50,528 nucleotides of DNA from Octopus sinensis (Eukaryota), in contig NW_021834269.1 of the NCBI RefSeq assembly GCF_006345805.1, forward strand, positions 1 to 50,528, given 5' to 3'. This document shows, one piece after another, positions 13,085-48,651 of this stretch (the first letter of the stretch is position 1; every line of letters starts with the position of its first letter). The position numbers and the translations under genes are program-made. Below the pieces are notes generated by a model, which did not search any database, was not told where the DNA came from, and worked only from the letters and a program-made list of their open reading frames with translations.

Positions 13085-13252
13085 CTAAATTAAGATTTTG
13101 GTTTCTTTTTCTTTTTTCTTTTTTTTTTCTTTGCTTTCTTTCTTTCTGCAAAGTTCACACCATTCAACTTCACTTTCCTCTTCGCTCACACTTTCTTCTT
13201 CTTTGCTGTCGTGTATTCTTGCAAACACGCGTTTGGCTACTATGTCCGTCGC
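13085..13252 (-). CDS. Micro-protein copy A, terminal coding exon (ATDIVAKRVFARIHDSKEEESVSEEESEVEWCELCRKKESKEKKKKKEKETKILI*)
   Basis: Acceptor ctctctttttatttctttcag|GCG; 168 nt open in phase 0 to TAG at 13085-13087; AATAAA downstream (reverse complement at 12767-12772). Spliced product is 84 aa. Confidence 0.8.
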   Translation of the reverse strand, partial: ATDIVAKRVFARIHDSKEEESVSEEESEVEWCELCRKKESKEKKKKKEKETKILI

Positions 13253-13649
13253 CTGAAAGAAATAAAAAGAGAGAATCAACATCTCTAAAGGGGAAACTTT
13301 GAATTATACTCCCTCCCCTATGAAGATAGAAAGCTACTATACAGGTTACGTGTATTATATAATCCCTTGGTACCGTATGAATTGACAGGCCCCTGTTGAC
13401 AGGCCACTGACATTTAAGGTACTAACACATACAATATGCGAATTAGCAGCCACAGATTTCTGTAATTACTGTAACTAATGAGTATATAAATAGATTTCCT
13501 TGTGATTAGTCATAATGATGTAGACTCCTCTGATGAGACTACAGTAATCTTCTGAAAGCGATTAGTGTTTTCCATTAATCTACAGAAAGACAGCTAATCT
13601 AGCCCCGTTTATATATCAGCTGCGTAAATTACATATTCTTCTGTTTGTT

Positions 13650-14005
13650 TCAGTCATTTGACTGCGGCCATGCAGGAGCTCAACCTTCAGTCGAACAAAT
13701 CGACTCCAGGACTTATTCTTTGTAAGCCTGGTACTTATTCTGTCGGTCTCTGTTGCCGAACCTCTAAGTTACGGGGACATAAACACATCAACTTCAGTTG
13801 TCAAACGATGGTGGAGGACAAACACACATATATATATATGCGACGGGATTCTTTCAGTTTCCGTCTACCAAATCCACTCACAAGACTTTGGTCAGCCCAA
13901 GGCTATAGTAGAATACACTTGCCCAAGGTGCCGCGCAGTTGGACTGAACCCGGGACCACGAGGTTAGTAAGTAAGCTTCTTGCCACACACCCACTCCTGT
14001 GCCTA
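13650..14005 (-). mobile_element. SINE with tRNA-like head (paralog 45115-45460, +)
   Basis: B-box-like CCGGGTTCAGTCC; conserved body ggcaccttgggcaagtg...ggtagacggaaactgaaagaa. Confidence 0.7.
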
Positions 14006-15089
14006 TAATGTATGTACTTGTCTCAGGATGATCTCAGGATTATCCTGTTGATAATTTTAATAATTATTTTAAAGTCTAAACAAAGCAAGTTAAGACATTA
14101 AACATACAGGTTGAAGGTTAGTTCTATTATCTGGTATTTCAACATTTTAGGGTCAGAACCTGTTCTTCTGGGAATCTACAGAGAAAAGTTGTTGATAAAT
14201 GATGTCTCTGCTTTGTAGTGTGTGTATGAATGGCTGTTTTCTCTAAAATTGTTTTGTTTAAATCGGATATGTTTTAAATATGCGAGCTACACTTGTTAAT
14301 TAAAACTGCTTCTTTTATCCTTAAGTTCCCATTCTTTCTTTCTGTAGATTCAGTGGCAACTTTGACGTCTTGGGTGCAGCATTTGCACAATTTTTTTTTT
14401 TTGACAGAAGAAGCGTTAGCATAGAAATGTTCTTGGATCTTTTCGGCAGTTTTTTTCTAGCTGTGTCATATGAAATTGTCACCCATAATTTGACCCTAGT
14501 ATCAATCTATTGCATTTCAATCTGTTTTAGAGTTAGGGTTAGGGGTGGGGGGAAGGATATCTTTTTTTTCTTCAGAAATGTAAATAAACCCAATCTGTTT
14601 CTTAAACGAGGGAATATTCATACAGCATGGAATGTTTTCACCTCAATAGATGTCATTGATTGGTTGAAATTGCAGAAATTGAAGAAAAAAAAACAACAAA
14701 TATCTTACAAACTATAGAATTTTCTCAATAAAGCCAAGAGAAAAAGATGTTTTATAAACACATTCTACCAGTATACGAAGTTTAAAAGTGTTTAGTTAAC
14801 TAGAAATTATTTTAAAACGCTGCTGTTCAAACCGAAAAGATCCATGTTCTTTAATGCTTATGAGAACCTTCATATTTCACGTTGAAGTATTGGTCGAGGG
14901 CCAATCTCTCTGCGAACACTTCGGTTTCGATGCCTTTTCTAAAAGCCTCATCTAACTTCCTCACTAGCTCTCCTTTTACTCTGTTTCTTTCAACTGCAAG
15001 TCCTTTGCAAGTCTGTTCTGATGGTCCTTTTCAGGGTGAACCACTATTTATAGTTGACAATTGCCTCAGTCAACGGCTTAACTAATTCA

Positions 15090-45317: not shown

Positions 45318-45524
45318 TTGTCCTCCACCATCGTTTGACAACCGAAGTTGGTGTGTTTATGTACCCGTAACTTAGGGGTTCGGCAACAGAGACCGACAGA
45401 ATAAGTACTAGGCTTACAAGGAATAAGTCCTGCATGGCCGCAGTCAAATGACTGAAAAATGCAGAAGAATATGTAATTTACGCAGTTGATATATAAACAG
45501 GGCTAGATTAGCTGTCTTTCAGTA

Positions 45525-48188
45525 TGTTACGAAATGTGAATATCTTCTCTTGCACTTTCGGGGTGCAAGAAGCAATCACCTTCCGTTGCTTTAATATCCA
45601 GATTCTTACCAGTCAGAAACAACAAGACGCAGACGTAAAATATATATATATACTTTATTCTCTTATGACAGTAACAAATAAGTGGTATATCTGGGTATCC
45701 CTTTGGTATAGATGTGTCAGAGCTGAACTTTATCGCTGTAGAATTTACAATGTTCAAATGCTAACGACACAACCATGATGGCGTCCGGAACAGGGAGAAG
45801 ATGTGGTCTGCAACAATTTGGTTAAAGTCTTCAGCCGACTGCTATCAAATACGGACAGAGAGAAAATATACGTCCGTTGCCTTCAGCCGCTGTGCCTCAA
45901 GTCACTGCTTGCTGCTGCTAGTGGTCAAACGTTTTACGCCCCCCTTGCCTCTTTTCTAAGGGTCGCTTTTTCCTAGCCAATCAGCTAATTCCACGATAGC
46001 AATATTCCCTCTTCTGGTGATGAAAACACGCGCGAATCAGAAAAGGGCGTTGCGCGCGCGCGCTGTTGTATAGCGTCACTACAAAGGCTCCCCCACAAGT
46101 GCGTAGCACGACACAAAATTCCTTGTAGTGACTTTAAAACTCAAGGTGGATACCAGATAACCAAATAGCACACAATATAATAAAAATGGCAAAATTTACA
46201 TCATACATAAGAAATTCACCAAAAGGAAAAAATACTCAAAATGAGCAAAAATCAAAAGTGCATGCGTGAATAAGAATAGAGCCTTCCGCTGAAAGGAGCG
46301 GAGGGAAAGCAAAACTCACAGTTAATGAACCTAGGCGAAGTAAAATCCAACTCCTCTAAAGGTAGTTGATCCTGCGAAATAGCAGTTAAGTCAATTACTG
46401 CAGGAGAGGAAATGGAATCGACAGATAGATCGCCAGTAACACAAAGGCAGACAGTGCAAGCATGCTGGTGTGATGCGCGAGACAGATAATTTTCTCTGTT
46501 AATTACGTGACCAACAGGGGTCTAACAGGGAAAAATAATTACGCCTAAACATGGGCGCAGCGCATGGGAACATCCGACGTTCTATGAGTCGGGAAAAGAA
46601 TTAAGCTAACGCAAAGGTGTTGCAAAAACAAGGCAGTACACGTGCAAAGCAAGGGTGCATGAATGCAATAGGGCTTGCCAGACCGAAAAACAGCAATGAA
46701 TATGCCAGTGGTTAATGTAGTAAGGCTGAGCTGCCAGCCAGTGCTTGAGCGATTATATGCCTCGTTCGTACAGGAACAAAAGCGTGACATGCTGGCGCGT
46801 TATAATGGACAAACAACCCTCTCTATGTATACGTGACCGACCTAGGGTCTTACAGAAATTAGGTGTGTCCACAAAGGCAAATTAGCATGGAAAAACAAGC
46901 GAGAAAAGCATGTGTGACGTATGTATGTGAGAGAGATAGCATTTATGTGTGTGTACGTGTGTTCGACAAAAATACAACAAGGTGAATGCGAGCAAAAAAA
47001 ATAAAAATACAGCGCATAGGAAAAAGTCTCTCAGGGCTATTTCAGACAAGATGGAGTTATTTTTACCAGTCCGTAATAGCCTGATACACAATAGCAGTTC
47101 GTTCTGTAACAGAATGTTGAAATCACAAATGCAGATGCCGATTGAACACATATCGTGTAGCGGTTGTAGCTTCGATGCTGTGACAGGTTAAATCGTTACA
47201 GAAGAATCTCGCAGATAGACTGTGCTGTTAATCCTTGGTGTGCTATGCACAAACAGCGTGTACGCTAAAGTTCCGCGAGTTGCTATGTACATCTTGTGGA
47301 GGTCGACGGTGTTGAAAGGCGACGGTGGTGGAGGCGACTGTATTGGACTTGAGACACATTGTTCTTAGTGGTGATGGCGACGAAGATAACGACGACGTGA
47401 AGTTGAAAGACGACGATGGCAAAGAAAAAGCATCGATGATATGAATGCGTCCGTCATTATTGTTGAAGAATAAGAAAGGCTCCTTCTATAACTGTTTGAG
47501 GTGGCCGGAAACAAATCGTCGAAAGATGAATGCGTAGAGTTTATCGTGTTCAGACCTGGCAGAAAAACTGGATTTTTTTTTTGTTGTTAAGTGATCTCTG
47601 GTTTGAGACCAGAATCACGTCGGGGGTCACCAGTGTTACGACCAGTGAAATATCTTCTCTTGCACTTTCGGGGTGCAAGAAGCAATCACCTTCCGTTGCT
47701 TTAATATCCAGATTCTTACCAGTCAGAAACAACAAGACGCAGACGTAAAATATATATATATACTTTATTCTCTTATGACAGTAACAAATAAGTGGTATAT
47801 CTGGGTATCCCTTTGGTATAGATGTGTCAGAGCTGAACTTTATCGCTGTAGAATTTACAATGTTCAAATGCTAACGACACACCAAGATGGGCGTCCGGAA
47901 CAGGGAGAATGTGGTCTGCAACAATTGGTTAAAGTCTTCAGCGGACTGCTATCAAATACGGACAGAGAAAATATACGTCCGTTGCCTTCAGCCGCTGTGC
48001 CTCAAGTCACTGCTTGCTGCTGCTAGTGGTCAAACGTTTTACGCTCCCCTTGCCTCTTTTCTAAGGGTCGCTTTTTCCTAGCCAATCAGCTAATTCCACG
48101 GTAGCAATATTCCCTCTTCTGGTAATAAAAACACGCGCGAATCAGAAAAGGGCGTTGCGCGCGCGCGCTGTTGTATAGCGTCACTACA
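45525..48188 (-). mobile_element. Non-autonomous Ty3/Gypsy-type LTR retroelement inserted in the intron of copy B
   Basis: Two LTRs (45525-46083, 47634-48188) with TG...CA ends; 4-bp TSD AGTA (45521-45524, 48189-48192); tRNA-Trp PBS on the minus strand (47613-47632); PPT-like GGGGGAG next to the other LTR; no pol ORF; absent from the left arm. Confidence 0.9.
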
Positions 48189-48516
48189 AGTAGATTAATG
48201 GAAAACACTAATCGCTATTAGAAGATTACTGTAGTCTCATCAGAGGAGTCTACATTATTATGACTAATCACAAGGAAATCTATTTATATACTCATCAGTT
48301 ACAGTAATTACAGAAATCTGTGGCTGCTAATTCGCATATTGTATGTGTTAGTACCTTAAATGTCAGTGGCCTGTCAACAGGGCCTGTCATTCATACGGTA
48401 CCAAGGGATTATATAATACACGTAACCTGTATAGTAGCTTTCTATCTTCATAGGGGAGGGAGATAATTCAAAGTTTCCCTTTAGAGATGTTGATTCTCTC
48501 TTTTTATTTCTTTCAG

Positions 48517-48651
48517 TTGGGGCTCATGGCAATCGAATACGCGGTTGAAAGAAAAGACGAAGAGGAAAGTGAAGATGAATGCAGTGAGGATAGCAGAAAG
48601 AAGAAAGGAAAGAAAGAAAAAAAAAGAAAAGAAACCAAAATCTTAATTTAG
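48517..48651 (+). CDS. Micro-protein copy B, terminal coding exon (LGLMAIEYAVERKDEEESEDECSEDSRKKKGKKEKKRKETKILI*)
   Basis: Same acceptor context as copy A (ctctctttttatttctttcag|TTG); 135 nt in frame to the same ...ATC TTA ATT TAG. Spliced product is 71 aa. Confidence 0.8.
   Translation: MGLMAIEYAVERKDEEESEDECSEDSRKKKGKKEKKRKETKILI

Follow-up and report, generated by a model that had tools for sequence, protein, structure and literature searches.

What are the two short spliced reading frames found in a 50,528-nt stretch of Octopus sinensis DNA (contig NW_021834269.1, here the window), and why do their coding bases differ so much more than the DNA around them? An earlier note, made from the letters of the window, had placed both genes, and every one of its coordinates holds (Table 1), with products of 84 aa and 71 aa and both introns in phase 0. 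The gene A product (87 + 168 nt) reads MLPVARIAFEALKPAAGALARHGPTVAAG before the exon junction and ATDIVAKRVFARIHDSKEEESVSEEESEVEWCELCRKKESKEKKKKKEKETKILI after it, and that of gene B (81 + 135 nt) reads MFLVARLALQVAARAVVRYAPRIVASH and LGLMAIEYAVERKDEEESEDECSEDSRKKKGKKEKKRKETKILI, each followed by the stop. In gene A, exon 1 encodes a hypervariable, Ala/Arg-rich N-terminal segment, and exon 2 continues with a hypervariable block, an acidic Ser/Glu stretch, the motif WCELC and a Lys-rich tail with the KETKILI end. The note had also claimed that the ATG, the splice sites and the KETKILI end are shared and that the indels net to multiples of three, and both points are borne out: the ATG context, the GTAAGT donor, the TCTCTTTTTATTTCTTTCAG acceptor, the TAG stop and the KETKILI end are common to the two genes, and their length differences are 6 nt and 33 nt, each a multiple of three. 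The final 27 bases of exon 2, stop codon included, are the same in both genes. Relative to gene A, the gene B intron has an extra repeat-containing insertion of ~2.7 kb (~45525-48189).

Table 1. Features of the two genes and of the duplication that carries them, in window positions
Feature	Position	Strand	Remarks
Left arm, inverted duplication	11579-26072		carries gene A; boundaries approximate
Gene A putative 3' UTR	12767-13084	-	(CA)n microsatellite 12903-13021; ATTAAA 12812-12817; AATAAA 12767-12772
Gene A exon 2, coding	13085-13252	-	55 codons + TAG; 168 nt
Gene A intron	13253-15970	-	2718 nt, phase 0, GTAAGT...TTTCAG; dispersed-repeat copies inside
Gene A exon 1, coding	15971-16057	-	29 codons, ATG to GT donor; 87 nt
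Gene A 5' flank	16058-16295	-	4 of 238 sites differ from gene B flank; may act as promoter or 5' UTR
Gene A leader and acceptor-like polypyrimidine-AG	16058-16090	-	within 5' flank
~310 bp dispersed repeat, 3' part	16133-16265		within gene A 5' flank; also at >30 other genomic loci
Gene A TATATAA	16147-16153	-	96 nt upstream of ATG
Palindrome spacer	26073-31155		between arms
1.4-kb repeat copy	26095-27499		in spacer
(ACAT)n array	28029-28320		in spacer
LINE-like element, 5' part	28551-30760	+	in spacer; zf-CCHC ORF and Exo_endo_phos ORF
Right arm, inverted duplication	31156-50158		carries gene B; boundaries approximate
Gene B 5' flank	42585-42822	+	homologous to gene A 5' flank
Gene B TATA-like motif (TATATGA)	42727-42733	+	counterpart of gene A TATATAA
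Gene B exon 1, coding	42823-42903	+	27 codons; 81 nt
Gene B intron	42904-48516	+	5613 nt, phase 0; homologous to gene A intron
Gene B exon 2, coding	48517-48651	+	44 codons + TAG; 135 nt
Gene B putative 3' UTR	48652-48923	+	(CA)n tract; ATTAAA 48918-48923

The contrast in divergence between introns and coding sequence is the key fact of this locus, and one that the earlier note had missed. Introns, leader and flanks are ~98.5% identical between genes A and B, whereas 12-17% of aligned sites are mismatched in the coding bases, with 51 gapped bases in addition. Coding bases have thus diverged ~10x as fast as the DNA around them, and nearly all changes alter an amino acid. ATG, donor and acceptor mark, to the base, where identity switches, and the divergent part ends near the stop; in exon 2 the divergence sets in at the first base past the AG. 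Mismatches number 29/210 in the CDS and 18/1168 in the adjoining leader, intron and 3' flank, a comparison set of ~1170 nt (Fisher p = 1.3e-13), and this pattern far exceeds chance. In exon 1, 13 of 77 aligned sites differ and 14 nt are gapped, against 1.3-1.7% in its flanks, while the intron is 98.7% identical over its first 300 nt and 99.3% over its last 300 nt. When the ~15 kb of aligned arms were scanned, the two CDS segments came out as the sole substitution-dense islands of complex sequence, bar one; the remainder comprised microsatellites, indels, misaligned repeat copies and a local 150-bp tandem duplication. The exception is a small cluster within a TE zinc-finger ORF (22399-22450 / 37803-37854).

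The O. sinensis genome holds four distinct copies: genes A and B, and two further copies, C26a and C26b, in tandem on chromosome scaffold C26. Exon 1 measures 87/81/87/30 nt across the copies and exon 2 135-313 nt. Despite large indels, the reading frame is uninterrupted and in phase as far as the Cys motif, both in these four copies and in Octopus vulgaris. Beyond this motif, poly(A) runs shift the last ~10 codons, and since three different C-termini occur (KETKILI, KKKPQS and NHNLNLG), the case that the tail end is conserved is weakened.

The O. vulgaris sequence is the positional ortholog CAI9741335.1 (UniProt A0AA36FJJ9; GCA_951406725.2, OX597839.1), a 73-aa "hypothetical predicted protein" and the one homolog that the A+B profile detected (E = 1e-11) among 1.84 billion representative proteins. 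Its two coding exons are separated by an intron of ~2.7 kb with the donor and acceptor of the family, and its locus is collinear with that of C26a at 96.7%, including a Pex2_Pex12-domain gene ~7 kb downstream. Exon 1 differs from that of C26a by 2 nt, whereas exon 2 is put together as another mosaic, AAGGAIEDFVAETDDGIEESEFDWCELCGMLKGMKKKKKKKPQS. Both proteins end in KKKPQS, and those of genes A and B in KETKILI. The annotation pipeline used for O. vulgaris combined ab initio prediction and RNA (PMC10700109), so this model could be ab initio rather than RNA-derived. Beyond this protein, searches of the protein collections, of Pfam domains and of RNA families gave no match. The pair had been described as unannotated, which stands for O. 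sinensis, none of whose four proteins is present in the protein collections searched, and fails for the family as a whole, because the O. vulgaris ortholog is already deposited. By these comparisons, the family is known so far only from the Octopus vulgaris/sinensis lineage.

How are genes A and B arranged? They had been described as divergent within a large inverted repeat. The duplication is present in the contig, with arms of ~15-19 kb that are 91-98% identical; the orientation is contig-specific, the paralogs on C26 being in tandem. It is quite conceivable, although we lean the other way, that the paralogs really lie in tandem, as they do on C26, and that the head-to-head inversion in this unplaced 50.5-kb contig arose in assembly, which would touch the arrangement alone and leave the genes themselves unaffected. 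On C26 the A-type and B-type copies both lie on the minus strand, ~29.5 kb apart. Moreover, contig C9024 duplicates window positions 1-28420 at 99.6% and ends within the (ACAT)n array adjoining the palindrome centre; C26, reversed, is collinear with window positions 1-5535 and then directly with 32204-50158; and a 97% direct repeat (5782-7185 / 26095-27499) flanks the extra segment of the contig. Against an artefact, divergence of 2-9% between the arms, together with several TE insertions that set them apart, means that the palindrome is not a fold-back of a single molecule. The inner arm ends (25470-26072 / 31156-31786) match each other, with no match in the 80 kb of C26 examined, and in their exons genes A and B differ from each C26 copy, so the contig has sequence of its own.

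The substitutions follow the reading frame. In ungapped blocks of the five family members, a small sample whose sequences are mutually non-independent, 42 variable sites fall at codon positions 1 and 2 and 5 at position 3 (binomial probability of ≤5/47 at position 3, 3e-4); exon 1 contributes 9, 9 and 1 of them at codon positions 1, 2 and 3, and the opening 15 codons of exon 2 contribute 11, 13 and 4. Truly synonymous variable sites amount to ~2-3/40, near the flank level. Nei-Gojobori pN is 0.26-0.54 and pS 0-0.20 in all 10 pairs; between copies, amino-acid-changing sites thus differ at 26-54%, against no more than ~1-10% for synonymous sites, introns, leader and 3' flank. The 10 differences between exon 1 of gene A and of C26a comprise ~9.5 nonsynonymous and 0.5 synonymous. 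Since variable sites avoid codon position 3 and pN greatly exceeds pS, these data point to genes A and B being translated genes under strong diversifying selection. The 18-residue block EDECSEDSRKKKGKKEKK, common to gene B and C26a, differs by 2 synonymous changes only, which indicates constraint on the tail.

We consider it likely that the window carries two paralogs of a small octopus gene family in whose N-domain the coding bases owe their divergence to positive diversifying selection. Selection on the protein would separate these bases between copies while length changes are kept in frame, and the paralogs may also exchange exon segments, as suggested by short motifs shared in incompatible combinations. 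That a real, lineage-specific gene family lies in this transposon-rich DNA, as had been proposed, gains support from four independent lines: the base-exact, CDS-limited divergence, the frame-following substitutions, the open frames and the independent O. vulgaris model. Two points sit less easily with selection of this kind. The implied nonsynonymous rate, ~10-15x the local neutral divergence, is extreme and counts against it. The rate is also heterogeneous, exon 1 of C26a and of its O. vulgaris positional ortholog differing by 2 nt and exon 2 being largely different, a pattern easier to reconcile with replacement of segments than with steady substitution.

The exons could instead be old, that is, ancient paralogs or long-lived alleles held distinct by balancing or diversifying selection as in MHC-type loci, with the non-coding DNA homogenised and made to look young by repeated gene conversion or recombination. 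This alternative still needs selection on the protein and departs from our explanation in tempo alone. Motif sharing is reticulate (VAETDD in C26b and O. vulgaris, WCELC in gene A and O. vulgaris, the 18-residue block in gene B and C26a), and so is non-coding similarity, the O. vulgaris intron being 96.7% identical to that of gene B and 94.7% to that of C26b; besides, exon 2 differs strongly between positional orthologs only ~2.5 My apart. We nevertheless think it unlikely. In the five sequences, linked neutral divergence shows no rise beside the exons: variable-site density in the flanks is ~3% without increase toward them, the mean pairwise difference is ~1.3%, and the 25-nt bins adjoining the ATG and the donor hold 0 variable sites. 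Conversion tracts always ending exactly at splice sites and ATG are implausible, and the synonymous sites, at about flank level, also count against this reading.

A longer gene, of which the two exons would be the last two, with upstream coding or non-coding exon(s) joined 14 nt before the ATG and the 84-aa and 71-aa products incomplete, seems improbable to us. The 14-nt leader GTGAAGTTTTGAAT, identical in genes A and B and preceded by the acceptor-like CTTCTTTCAG, has the strong acceptor-like ATTTTTGCTCTTCTTTCAG directly before it in all copies, and the frame is open from that AG through to the ATG. However, the leader is invariant in 5/5 sequences, against ~60% variable sites right after the ATG, and the O. 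vulgaris model begins at the same ATG; for these two reasons this ATG is favoured as the translation start. There is also an A at position -3, and the arms hold no further divergence island or ORF of such signature. A non-coding first exon, as the earlier note had proposed, is entirely possible. Downstream, ATTAAA is present in 5/5 family copies and AATAAA in 4/5, and these probably serve as poly(A) signals.

That a local mutational process (exon-targeted hypermutation, slippage, DGR-like or RT-mediated mutagenesis) makes the islands in incidental or decaying ORFs, without selection for amino-acid change, is very improbable: part of exon 2 is indeed purine-rich and of low complexity with evident slippage (the 18-nt expansion in C26b, poly(A) run-length changes), and an endonuclease-bearing LINE lies at the palindrome centre, but such a process would neither spare third positions nor halt at the ATG; complex, non-repeat sequence makes up exon 1 and the opening 45 nt of exon 2, many adenines within the variable block are invariant, the neutral rate is a ceiling for relaxed constraint, and no template copy of either exon was found elsewhere in the genome.

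The family thus comprises genes with two coding exons, one phase-0 intron and products of 70-115 aa. The N-terminal domain (~40-45 residues), hypervariable, Ala/Arg-rich and predicted to be helical, spans the exon junction; it is followed by an acidic Ser/Glu stretch that varies in length and has CK2-type sites, carrying an 18-nt in-frame repeat expansion in C26b, then by a short Cys motif (WCELC, ECSEDS or ECCEHC, depending on the copy) and the conserved Lys-rich tail. An AF2 model of low confidence (pLDDT 59) places helices at residues 3-45 and 62-83 and a disordered acidic linker between them. By prediction the N-domain resembles a presequence in four proteins and a transmembrane segment in C26b, and because its character is not conserved no single targeting function can be assigned. 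No classical signal peptide is predicted in 4/5 proteins, so the product is more likely to be intracellular or organelle-/membrane-associated than a secreted toxin.

Several known systems come close to this family. Conotoxin superfamilies have conserved introns, one hypervariable coding segment, positively selected sites and frequent indels, and in their hypervariable exon Dn and Ds are both raised (PMC3862624). The octopus family is likewise small and multi-copy, but its synonymous sites remain near intron level, and its polarity is reversed: in conotoxins the N-terminal signal peptide is highly conserved, and a pro-region and a C-terminal mature toxin with a Cys framework come after it, whereas here variation starts from codon 2, the C-terminal tail is conserved and the Cys residues (1-3) form no fixed framework. 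Exons of 'accelerated evolution' beside conserved introns are also known from the PLA2 genes of crotaline snake venom. At MHC-type loci, the peptide-binding exons have dN > dS and introns are homogenised by recombination; the octopus genes resemble them in a dN far above dS over a short recognition-like segment, in adjacent introns that are far more similar and in reticulate motif sharing suggestive of segmental exchange, and differ in lacking an Ig or MHC fold, homology or raised linked neutral divergence. The preprodermaseptins of frog skin combine a conserved preproregion, an acidic propiece and a hypervariable cationic helix. The octopus family similarly has an acidic Glu-rich spacer alongside a cationic amphipathic helical segment, and one hypervariable domain in an otherwise conserved protein, but the domain order is reversed, a signal peptide is lacking, no dibasic processing site lies between the domains, and the Lys-rich tail and Cys motif have no counterpart.

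What could such a protein do in the octopus? We tentatively propose that the variable N-domain may determine specificity and keep pace with a fast-changing partner, as in an immune, reproductive or selfish-element conflict, and that the conserved charged tail might supply a constant anchoring or effector function.

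The coordinates, two-exon models, lengths of 84 and 71 aa and phase-0 joins claimed in the earlier note for the two micro-genes of the window, gene A and gene B, were matched exactly when both genes were re-examined. In each gene the phase-0 intron runs from a GTAAGT donor to the acceptor TCTCTTTTTATTTCTTTCAG, the stop codon is TAG, and position -3 of the ATG is an A. The claimed identity of the ATG, of the splice sites and of the KETKILI end was also borne out, the last 27 bases, stop codon included, being the same in the two genes.

Positions of the micro-genes of the family and of the candidate signals and repeats around them (window coordinates, except for the copies on scaffold C26)
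Feature	Position	Strand	Remarks
Gene A	16057-15971 + 13252-13085	minus	84 aa
Gene B	42823-42903 + 48517-48651	plus	71 aa
C26a	exon 1 at about 3,903,428	minus	chromosome scaffold C26
C26b	exon 1 at about 3,932,902	minus	chromosome scaffold C26
TATATAA, candidate signal	16147-16153		gene A; TATATGA in gene B; putative
ATTAAA and AATAAA, candidate signals	about 270-315 nt past stop		putative
LINE-like retrotransposon, 5΄ part	28551-30760	plus	palindrome spacer
~310-bp dispersed repeat	16133-16265 + 16823-16998	minus	>30 loci, 75-83% identity
SINE-like element, other copies	8623-8938, 9054-9482, 24090-24356, 42298-42612, 44283-44670		

When the two arms are aligned, they are nearly identical up to the ATG and then show dense substitutions and indels from codon 2 to the last base before the GT. 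The intron is again nearly identical between A and B, dense change restarts at the first base after the AG, and the divergence of exon 2 fades a few dozen bases ahead of the stop. The coding sequences of A and B differ at 29/210 aligned sites, with a further 51 gapped nucleotides, against 18/1168 mismatched sites in the adjacent leader, intron ends and 3΄ flank (Fisher p = 1.3e-13). When the whole of the aligned arms was scanned for substitution-dense islands, the two CDS segments stood out, the remaining islands being microsatellites, indels, misaligned repeat copies, one small cluster within a transposon zinc-finger ORF and a local tandem duplication. The pair 21448-21525 and 38989-39064, considered as a hyperdivergent upstream exon, was rejected as a misaligned local tandem duplication of ~150 bp; this tandem unit occupies 21251-21552 and 38814-39110, differs in copy number between the arms and mimics a divergence island in pairwise alignment. 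A four-way alignment of the 7 kb upstream was broken up by differential TE insertions and was unusable.

Whole-genome DNA and protein searches gave as family members only gene A, of which a second unplaced contig (C9024) carries an essentially identical copy, gene B, and the two copies C26a and C26b, which lie ~29.5 kb apart. Shared intron indels and flank similarity pair gene A with C26a and gene B with C26b, although the exons of each pair are strongly different. The ATG exon, the phase-0 intron, the GTAAGT donor and a TTTCAG acceptor are found at homologous positions throughout the family. In C26b, exon 1 has just 30 nt (MALLGLVTGA), and in exon 2 (C26:3929572-3929889) the 18-nt unit GAAGAAGAAAGTGAGAGC is tandemly expanded in frame to give (SEEESE)n; the protein has 115 aa and a net charge of about -24 outside the N-domain, the variable N-terminal ~40-45 residues.

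The homology search that the earlier note had suggested for both proteins was productive: their profile, run against 1.84 billion representative proteins, gave one real match, the O. vulgaris protein CAI9741335.1 / A0AA36FJJ9 (E = 1e-11, profile positions 1-79), which is 73 aa long and deposited as "Hypothetical predicted protein". Its gene has a donor and an acceptor homologous to those of the window genes, and its locus (L062, on OX597839.1) is collinear with C26, at C26a, over about 22 kb at 96.7%; collinearity also holds between the arms of the window and both C26 units. At L062:19799-22953, ~7 kb downstream of the A-type micro-gene and on the same strand, lies a gene with a Pex2_Pex12 domain (peroxisome biogenesis RING protein), to which C26 ~3,890,900-3,898,500 is homologous, and which is a useful synteny anchor for cephalopod orthologs. 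A word-indexed search of 5.8 billion proteins gave no match for gene A, only itself for the O. vulgaris protein, and a noise match (E = 0.27) for C26b. Pfam searches with the four O. sinensis proteins gave nothing above noise, with low-complexity matches below the cut-offs only, and a literature search found no papers on the O. vulgaris accession numbers. The description of the pair as unannotated stands only in part: an O. vulgaris ortholog is already deposited, while exact look-ups of the spliced proteins found none on record, which is weak evidence that the O. sinensis genes are unannotated. As far as can be seen, this is an orphan family limited to the O. vulgaris/sinensis lineage; the proposal of a real, lineage-specific family agrees with the frame-following substitutions and with a sole outside homolog in O. 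vulgaris.

What do the substitutions say about translation? They were counted in ungapped blocks covering the first 15 codons of exon 2 in five members (genes A and B, C26a, C26b and the O. vulgaris gene) and most of exon 1 in four, the five sequences of this sample not being independent of one another. Variable sites at codon positions 1, 2 and 3 number 11, 13 and 4 in the exon 2 block and 9, 9 and 1 in exon 1, that is, 42 at positions 1 and 2 and 5 at position 3 (binomial P(<=5/47 at position 3) = 3e-4). In the exon 2 block, Nei-Gojobori proportions of nonsynonymous differences (pN) are 0.26-0.54 and of synonymous differences (pS) 0-0.20 in 10/10 pairs; in exon 1, ~9.5 of the 10 sites that differ between gene A and C26a are nonsynonymous. 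Whole-exon pS values of ~0.3-0.45 were judged too high, through misalignment at repeats and indels, and the ungapped blocks were used instead. Truly synonymous variation affects about 2-3/40 third positions, which is near the variable-site density of the flanks in the same five sequences (~3%); pairwise, the flanks differ by ~1.3%, with no gradient toward the exons. Since third positions are spared, the change stops at the ATG and its rate is above neutral, this is not the behaviour of non-coding DNA, of a decaying pseudogene or of hypermutation. Judged from the sequence, such a pattern marks a frame that is translated and is under positive selection for amino-acid change, the N-domain changing roughly ten times faster than neutral DNA. 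Further downstream, gene B and C26a have in common a block of 18 residues with only two differences, both synonymous, which points to a probable constraint on the acidic, Cys- and Lys-rich part. We propose, and consider likely, that the micro-genes are real and code for protein, and that strong positive diversifying selection acts on their N-domain, accompanied by in-frame indels and probably by exchange of segments between copies.

The comparison between species bears on this exchange. The split between O. vulgaris and O. sinensis dates to about 2.5 Mya (PMC10700109), and C26a and the O. vulgaris gene are positional orthologs; their exons 1 differ by 2 nt, both nonsynonymous, and the first 15 codons of exon 2 give pN = 0.41. 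Exon 2 of O. vulgaris shares VAETDD with C26b, WCELC with gene A and the terminal KKKPQS with C26a, and this reticulate sharing of motifs suggests that the copies may exchange exon segments on top of point substitution. In the last ~10 codons (window 13085-13125 and 48615-48651), the length of an A-run sets three C-terminal frames, which end in KETKILI in genes A and B, in KKKPQS in C26a and O. vulgaris, and in NHNLNLG in C26b; C26a has TCG instead of TAG at the stop position of the window genes. Because the PQS ending is common to C26a and the O. vulgaris model, this variant is probably not an assembly error, and the differences in C-terminal frame within O. sinensis are either real or homopolymer errors. 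The mosaicism among copies and the abrupt difference of exon 2 between orthologs would also fit a reading in which the exons are old lineages and the non-coding DNA around them has been homogenised; we hold this to be unlikely, as linked neutral divergence is not elevated. On the same ground a recent arms race is the favoured tempo, which is less certain than selection itself.

The window is one entire unplaced contig (C10740), and in it genes A and B lie head to head in an inverted duplication whose arms (about 11579-26072 and 31156-50158) are 91-98% identical and differ by several transposon insertions, including an extra ~2.7 kb in the intron of gene B. The divergent orientation reported earlier is thus true of this contig, whereas both C26 copies share one strand. 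The window and C9024 contigs may be haplotigs of the C26 region, or else a duplicate distinct from it. That the sequenced individual carries these contigs and C26 as two haplotypes, or that they form a copy-number-variable array, seems to us quite unlikely; in either case, the A- and B-type genes would be hyperpolymorphic, with alleles that differ at ~45% of nonsynonymous sites in a 45-residue domain beside introns that differ by 1-4%, and would rank with the fastest-evolving coding sequences described in animals.

The inverted arrangement may itself be an artefact of assembly: C26, in reverse, is collinear with window 1-5535 and then directly with window 32204-50158, C9024 terminates in an (ACAT)n array beside the palindrome centre, and the extra segment is flanked by a 97% direct repeat. 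However, the arms are too unlike for a fold-back, and their inner ends match each other and nothing in the 80 kb of C26 that was compared. The direct repeat, of 1.4 kb (5782-7185 and 26095-27499), brackets the gene A-bearing segment that is extra relative to C26, and may have given rise to a rearrangement or to a mis-join in the assembly. C9024:31544-59974 (L054-L056) duplicates window 1-28420, gene A included, at 99.6% and stops inside the (ACAT)n tract 28029-28320; this overlap is assembly redundancy or haplotig overlap at a repeat-induced contig break.

The 14-nt leader, identical in genes A and B, stands behind an acceptor-like site, at which an upstream exon would join (16071/16072 and 42808/42809); that the two-exon models are part of a longer gene with upstream exons has, in our estimate, a small chance of being right. 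At gene A, the ~310-bp dispersed repeat is interrupted by another element, which is SINE-like (16428-16822). The ~310-bp repeat ends 76 nt ahead of the ATG and carries the TATATAA, and it is possible that it is a transposon-derived promoter. The surroundings are rich in transposons, with dispersed repeats and the LINE-like element, as the phrase "TE debris" in the earlier note had implied. The ORFs of the LINE-like element comprise one of 275 aa without a family, one with a zf-CCHC knuckle and one with an Exo_endo_phos (APE-type endonuclease) domain. Near the inner end of the left arm, an ORF fragment at 25070-25435 (+) has a strong DUF7041 match (E = 2.5e-24) and is probably a gag-like remnant of a retroelement. 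The C2H2 zinc-finger ORF fragments at 37423-37896 (+) and 9762-10109 (-) are 94% identical over 205 nt and, given this identity, probably belong to a repeated element and not to a host gene. In the six-frame list, the (TATG)163 tract at 36602-37253 and the (ACAT)74 tract at 28029-28320 produce spurious 'YVCMYVCM' ORFs that reach 285 aa. Scans of the window found neither a tRNA nor an Rfam family that reaches its gathering threshold; a snoRNA or miRNA host gene was discarded, as these scans gave no structured RNA and the conservation is not intron-specific, spanning the whole 15-kb arms.

A purely mutational origin of the hypervariability is barely credible, as such a process would neither spare third codon positions nor stop at the ATG. 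Two specific forms were rejected. For DGR-like or RT-mediated mutagenesis, no extra copy of either exon exists genome-wide as a template, and many adenines of the variable block are invariant. CpG-driven hypermutation leaves the spared third positions unexplained, and the substitutions between gene A and C26a are not mainly CpG transitions. The exons are GC- and CpG-richer than their flanks.

The N-domain has 22-37% Ala and a net charge of +4 in 4/5 proteins, and is amphipathic with a high hydrophobic moment; a single Glu stands at position 10 in the proteins of gene A, C26a and O. vulgaris, and C26b has a transmembrane-like hydrophobic segment of 20 residues and a net charge of -1. With the maximum 19-residue Kyte-Doolittle hydropathy as a heuristic for signal peptides, no conserved N-terminal signal peptide was found in the five proteins, the N-terminus being their most variable part: the maximum is 0.6-1.2 in 4/5, with Arg or Glu breaking the hydrophobic core, and 2.2, signal- or anchor-like, in C26b. 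C26b aside, the N-domain appears to resemble a mitochondrial presequence more than a signal peptide, and the product is probably not classically secreted. There follow an acidic Ser/Glu stretch with 1-15 CK2-type sites and a Lys-rich tail. Cys residues number 2, 1, 1, 3 and 2 across the five proteins and are sited in the conserved, not the variable, part; a conserved Cys framework in the variable segment is absent from all five. AlphaFold2, run with a 3-sequence alignment, gave at low confidence (pLDDT 59) helices at 3-45 and 62-83 joined by a disordered acidic linker; no solved or confidently predicted fold was found, this pLDDT being too low for a fold search.

A similar exon-restricted pattern occurs in snake venom PLA2 genes, frog-skin antimicrobial peptide precursors and MHC exons, and conotoxins too combine conserved introns with a hypervariable, positively selected coding segment (PMC3862624). 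The octopus family resembles venom and conotoxin-like families in its hypervariable coding segment, conserved introns and positive selection. Unlike all these systems, it is variable from codon 2 and conserved at the C-terminus, lacks a conserved signal peptide or Cys framework, and its synonymous sites are not accelerated. With MHC-like loci it shares dN > dS in a recognition-like segment, but its flanks, at ~1.3% pairwise, show no raised linked neutral diversity. It belongs to none of the conotoxin, PLA2, frog-skin precursor or MHC systems, and the most fitting description is that of a new orphan family in which a known evolutionary pattern takes a variant form.

Annotation routinely overlooks micro-proteins of <100 aa, which are difficult to tell apart from ORFs that arise by chance. 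In this family the case for translation is strong on sequence alone, as the substitutions respect the frame, the ATG and both splice sites, and this coding case is built on positive selection, not on conservation. Elsewhere, comparable rates are known chiefly in toxins, in immune and gamete-recognition genes and in selfish elements; to our knowledge, no such conflict locus has been characterised in cephalopods. In the mechanism we propose, the variable N-domain would set the specificity of some process of conflict or recognition, and the charged tail, which is conserved, may serve as a constant anchor or effector. If the haplotype or array reading held, the locus would be a previously unknown recognition or conflict locus of the octopus, driven by positive selection and exon-segment exchange, with self/non-self recognition, gamete recognition and a selfish toxin-antidote or drive element as candidate roles. 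The micro-gene family is a tractable candidate for cephalopod biology, and a test case for recurrent selection versus segmental exchange as the source of exon-restricted hypervariability.
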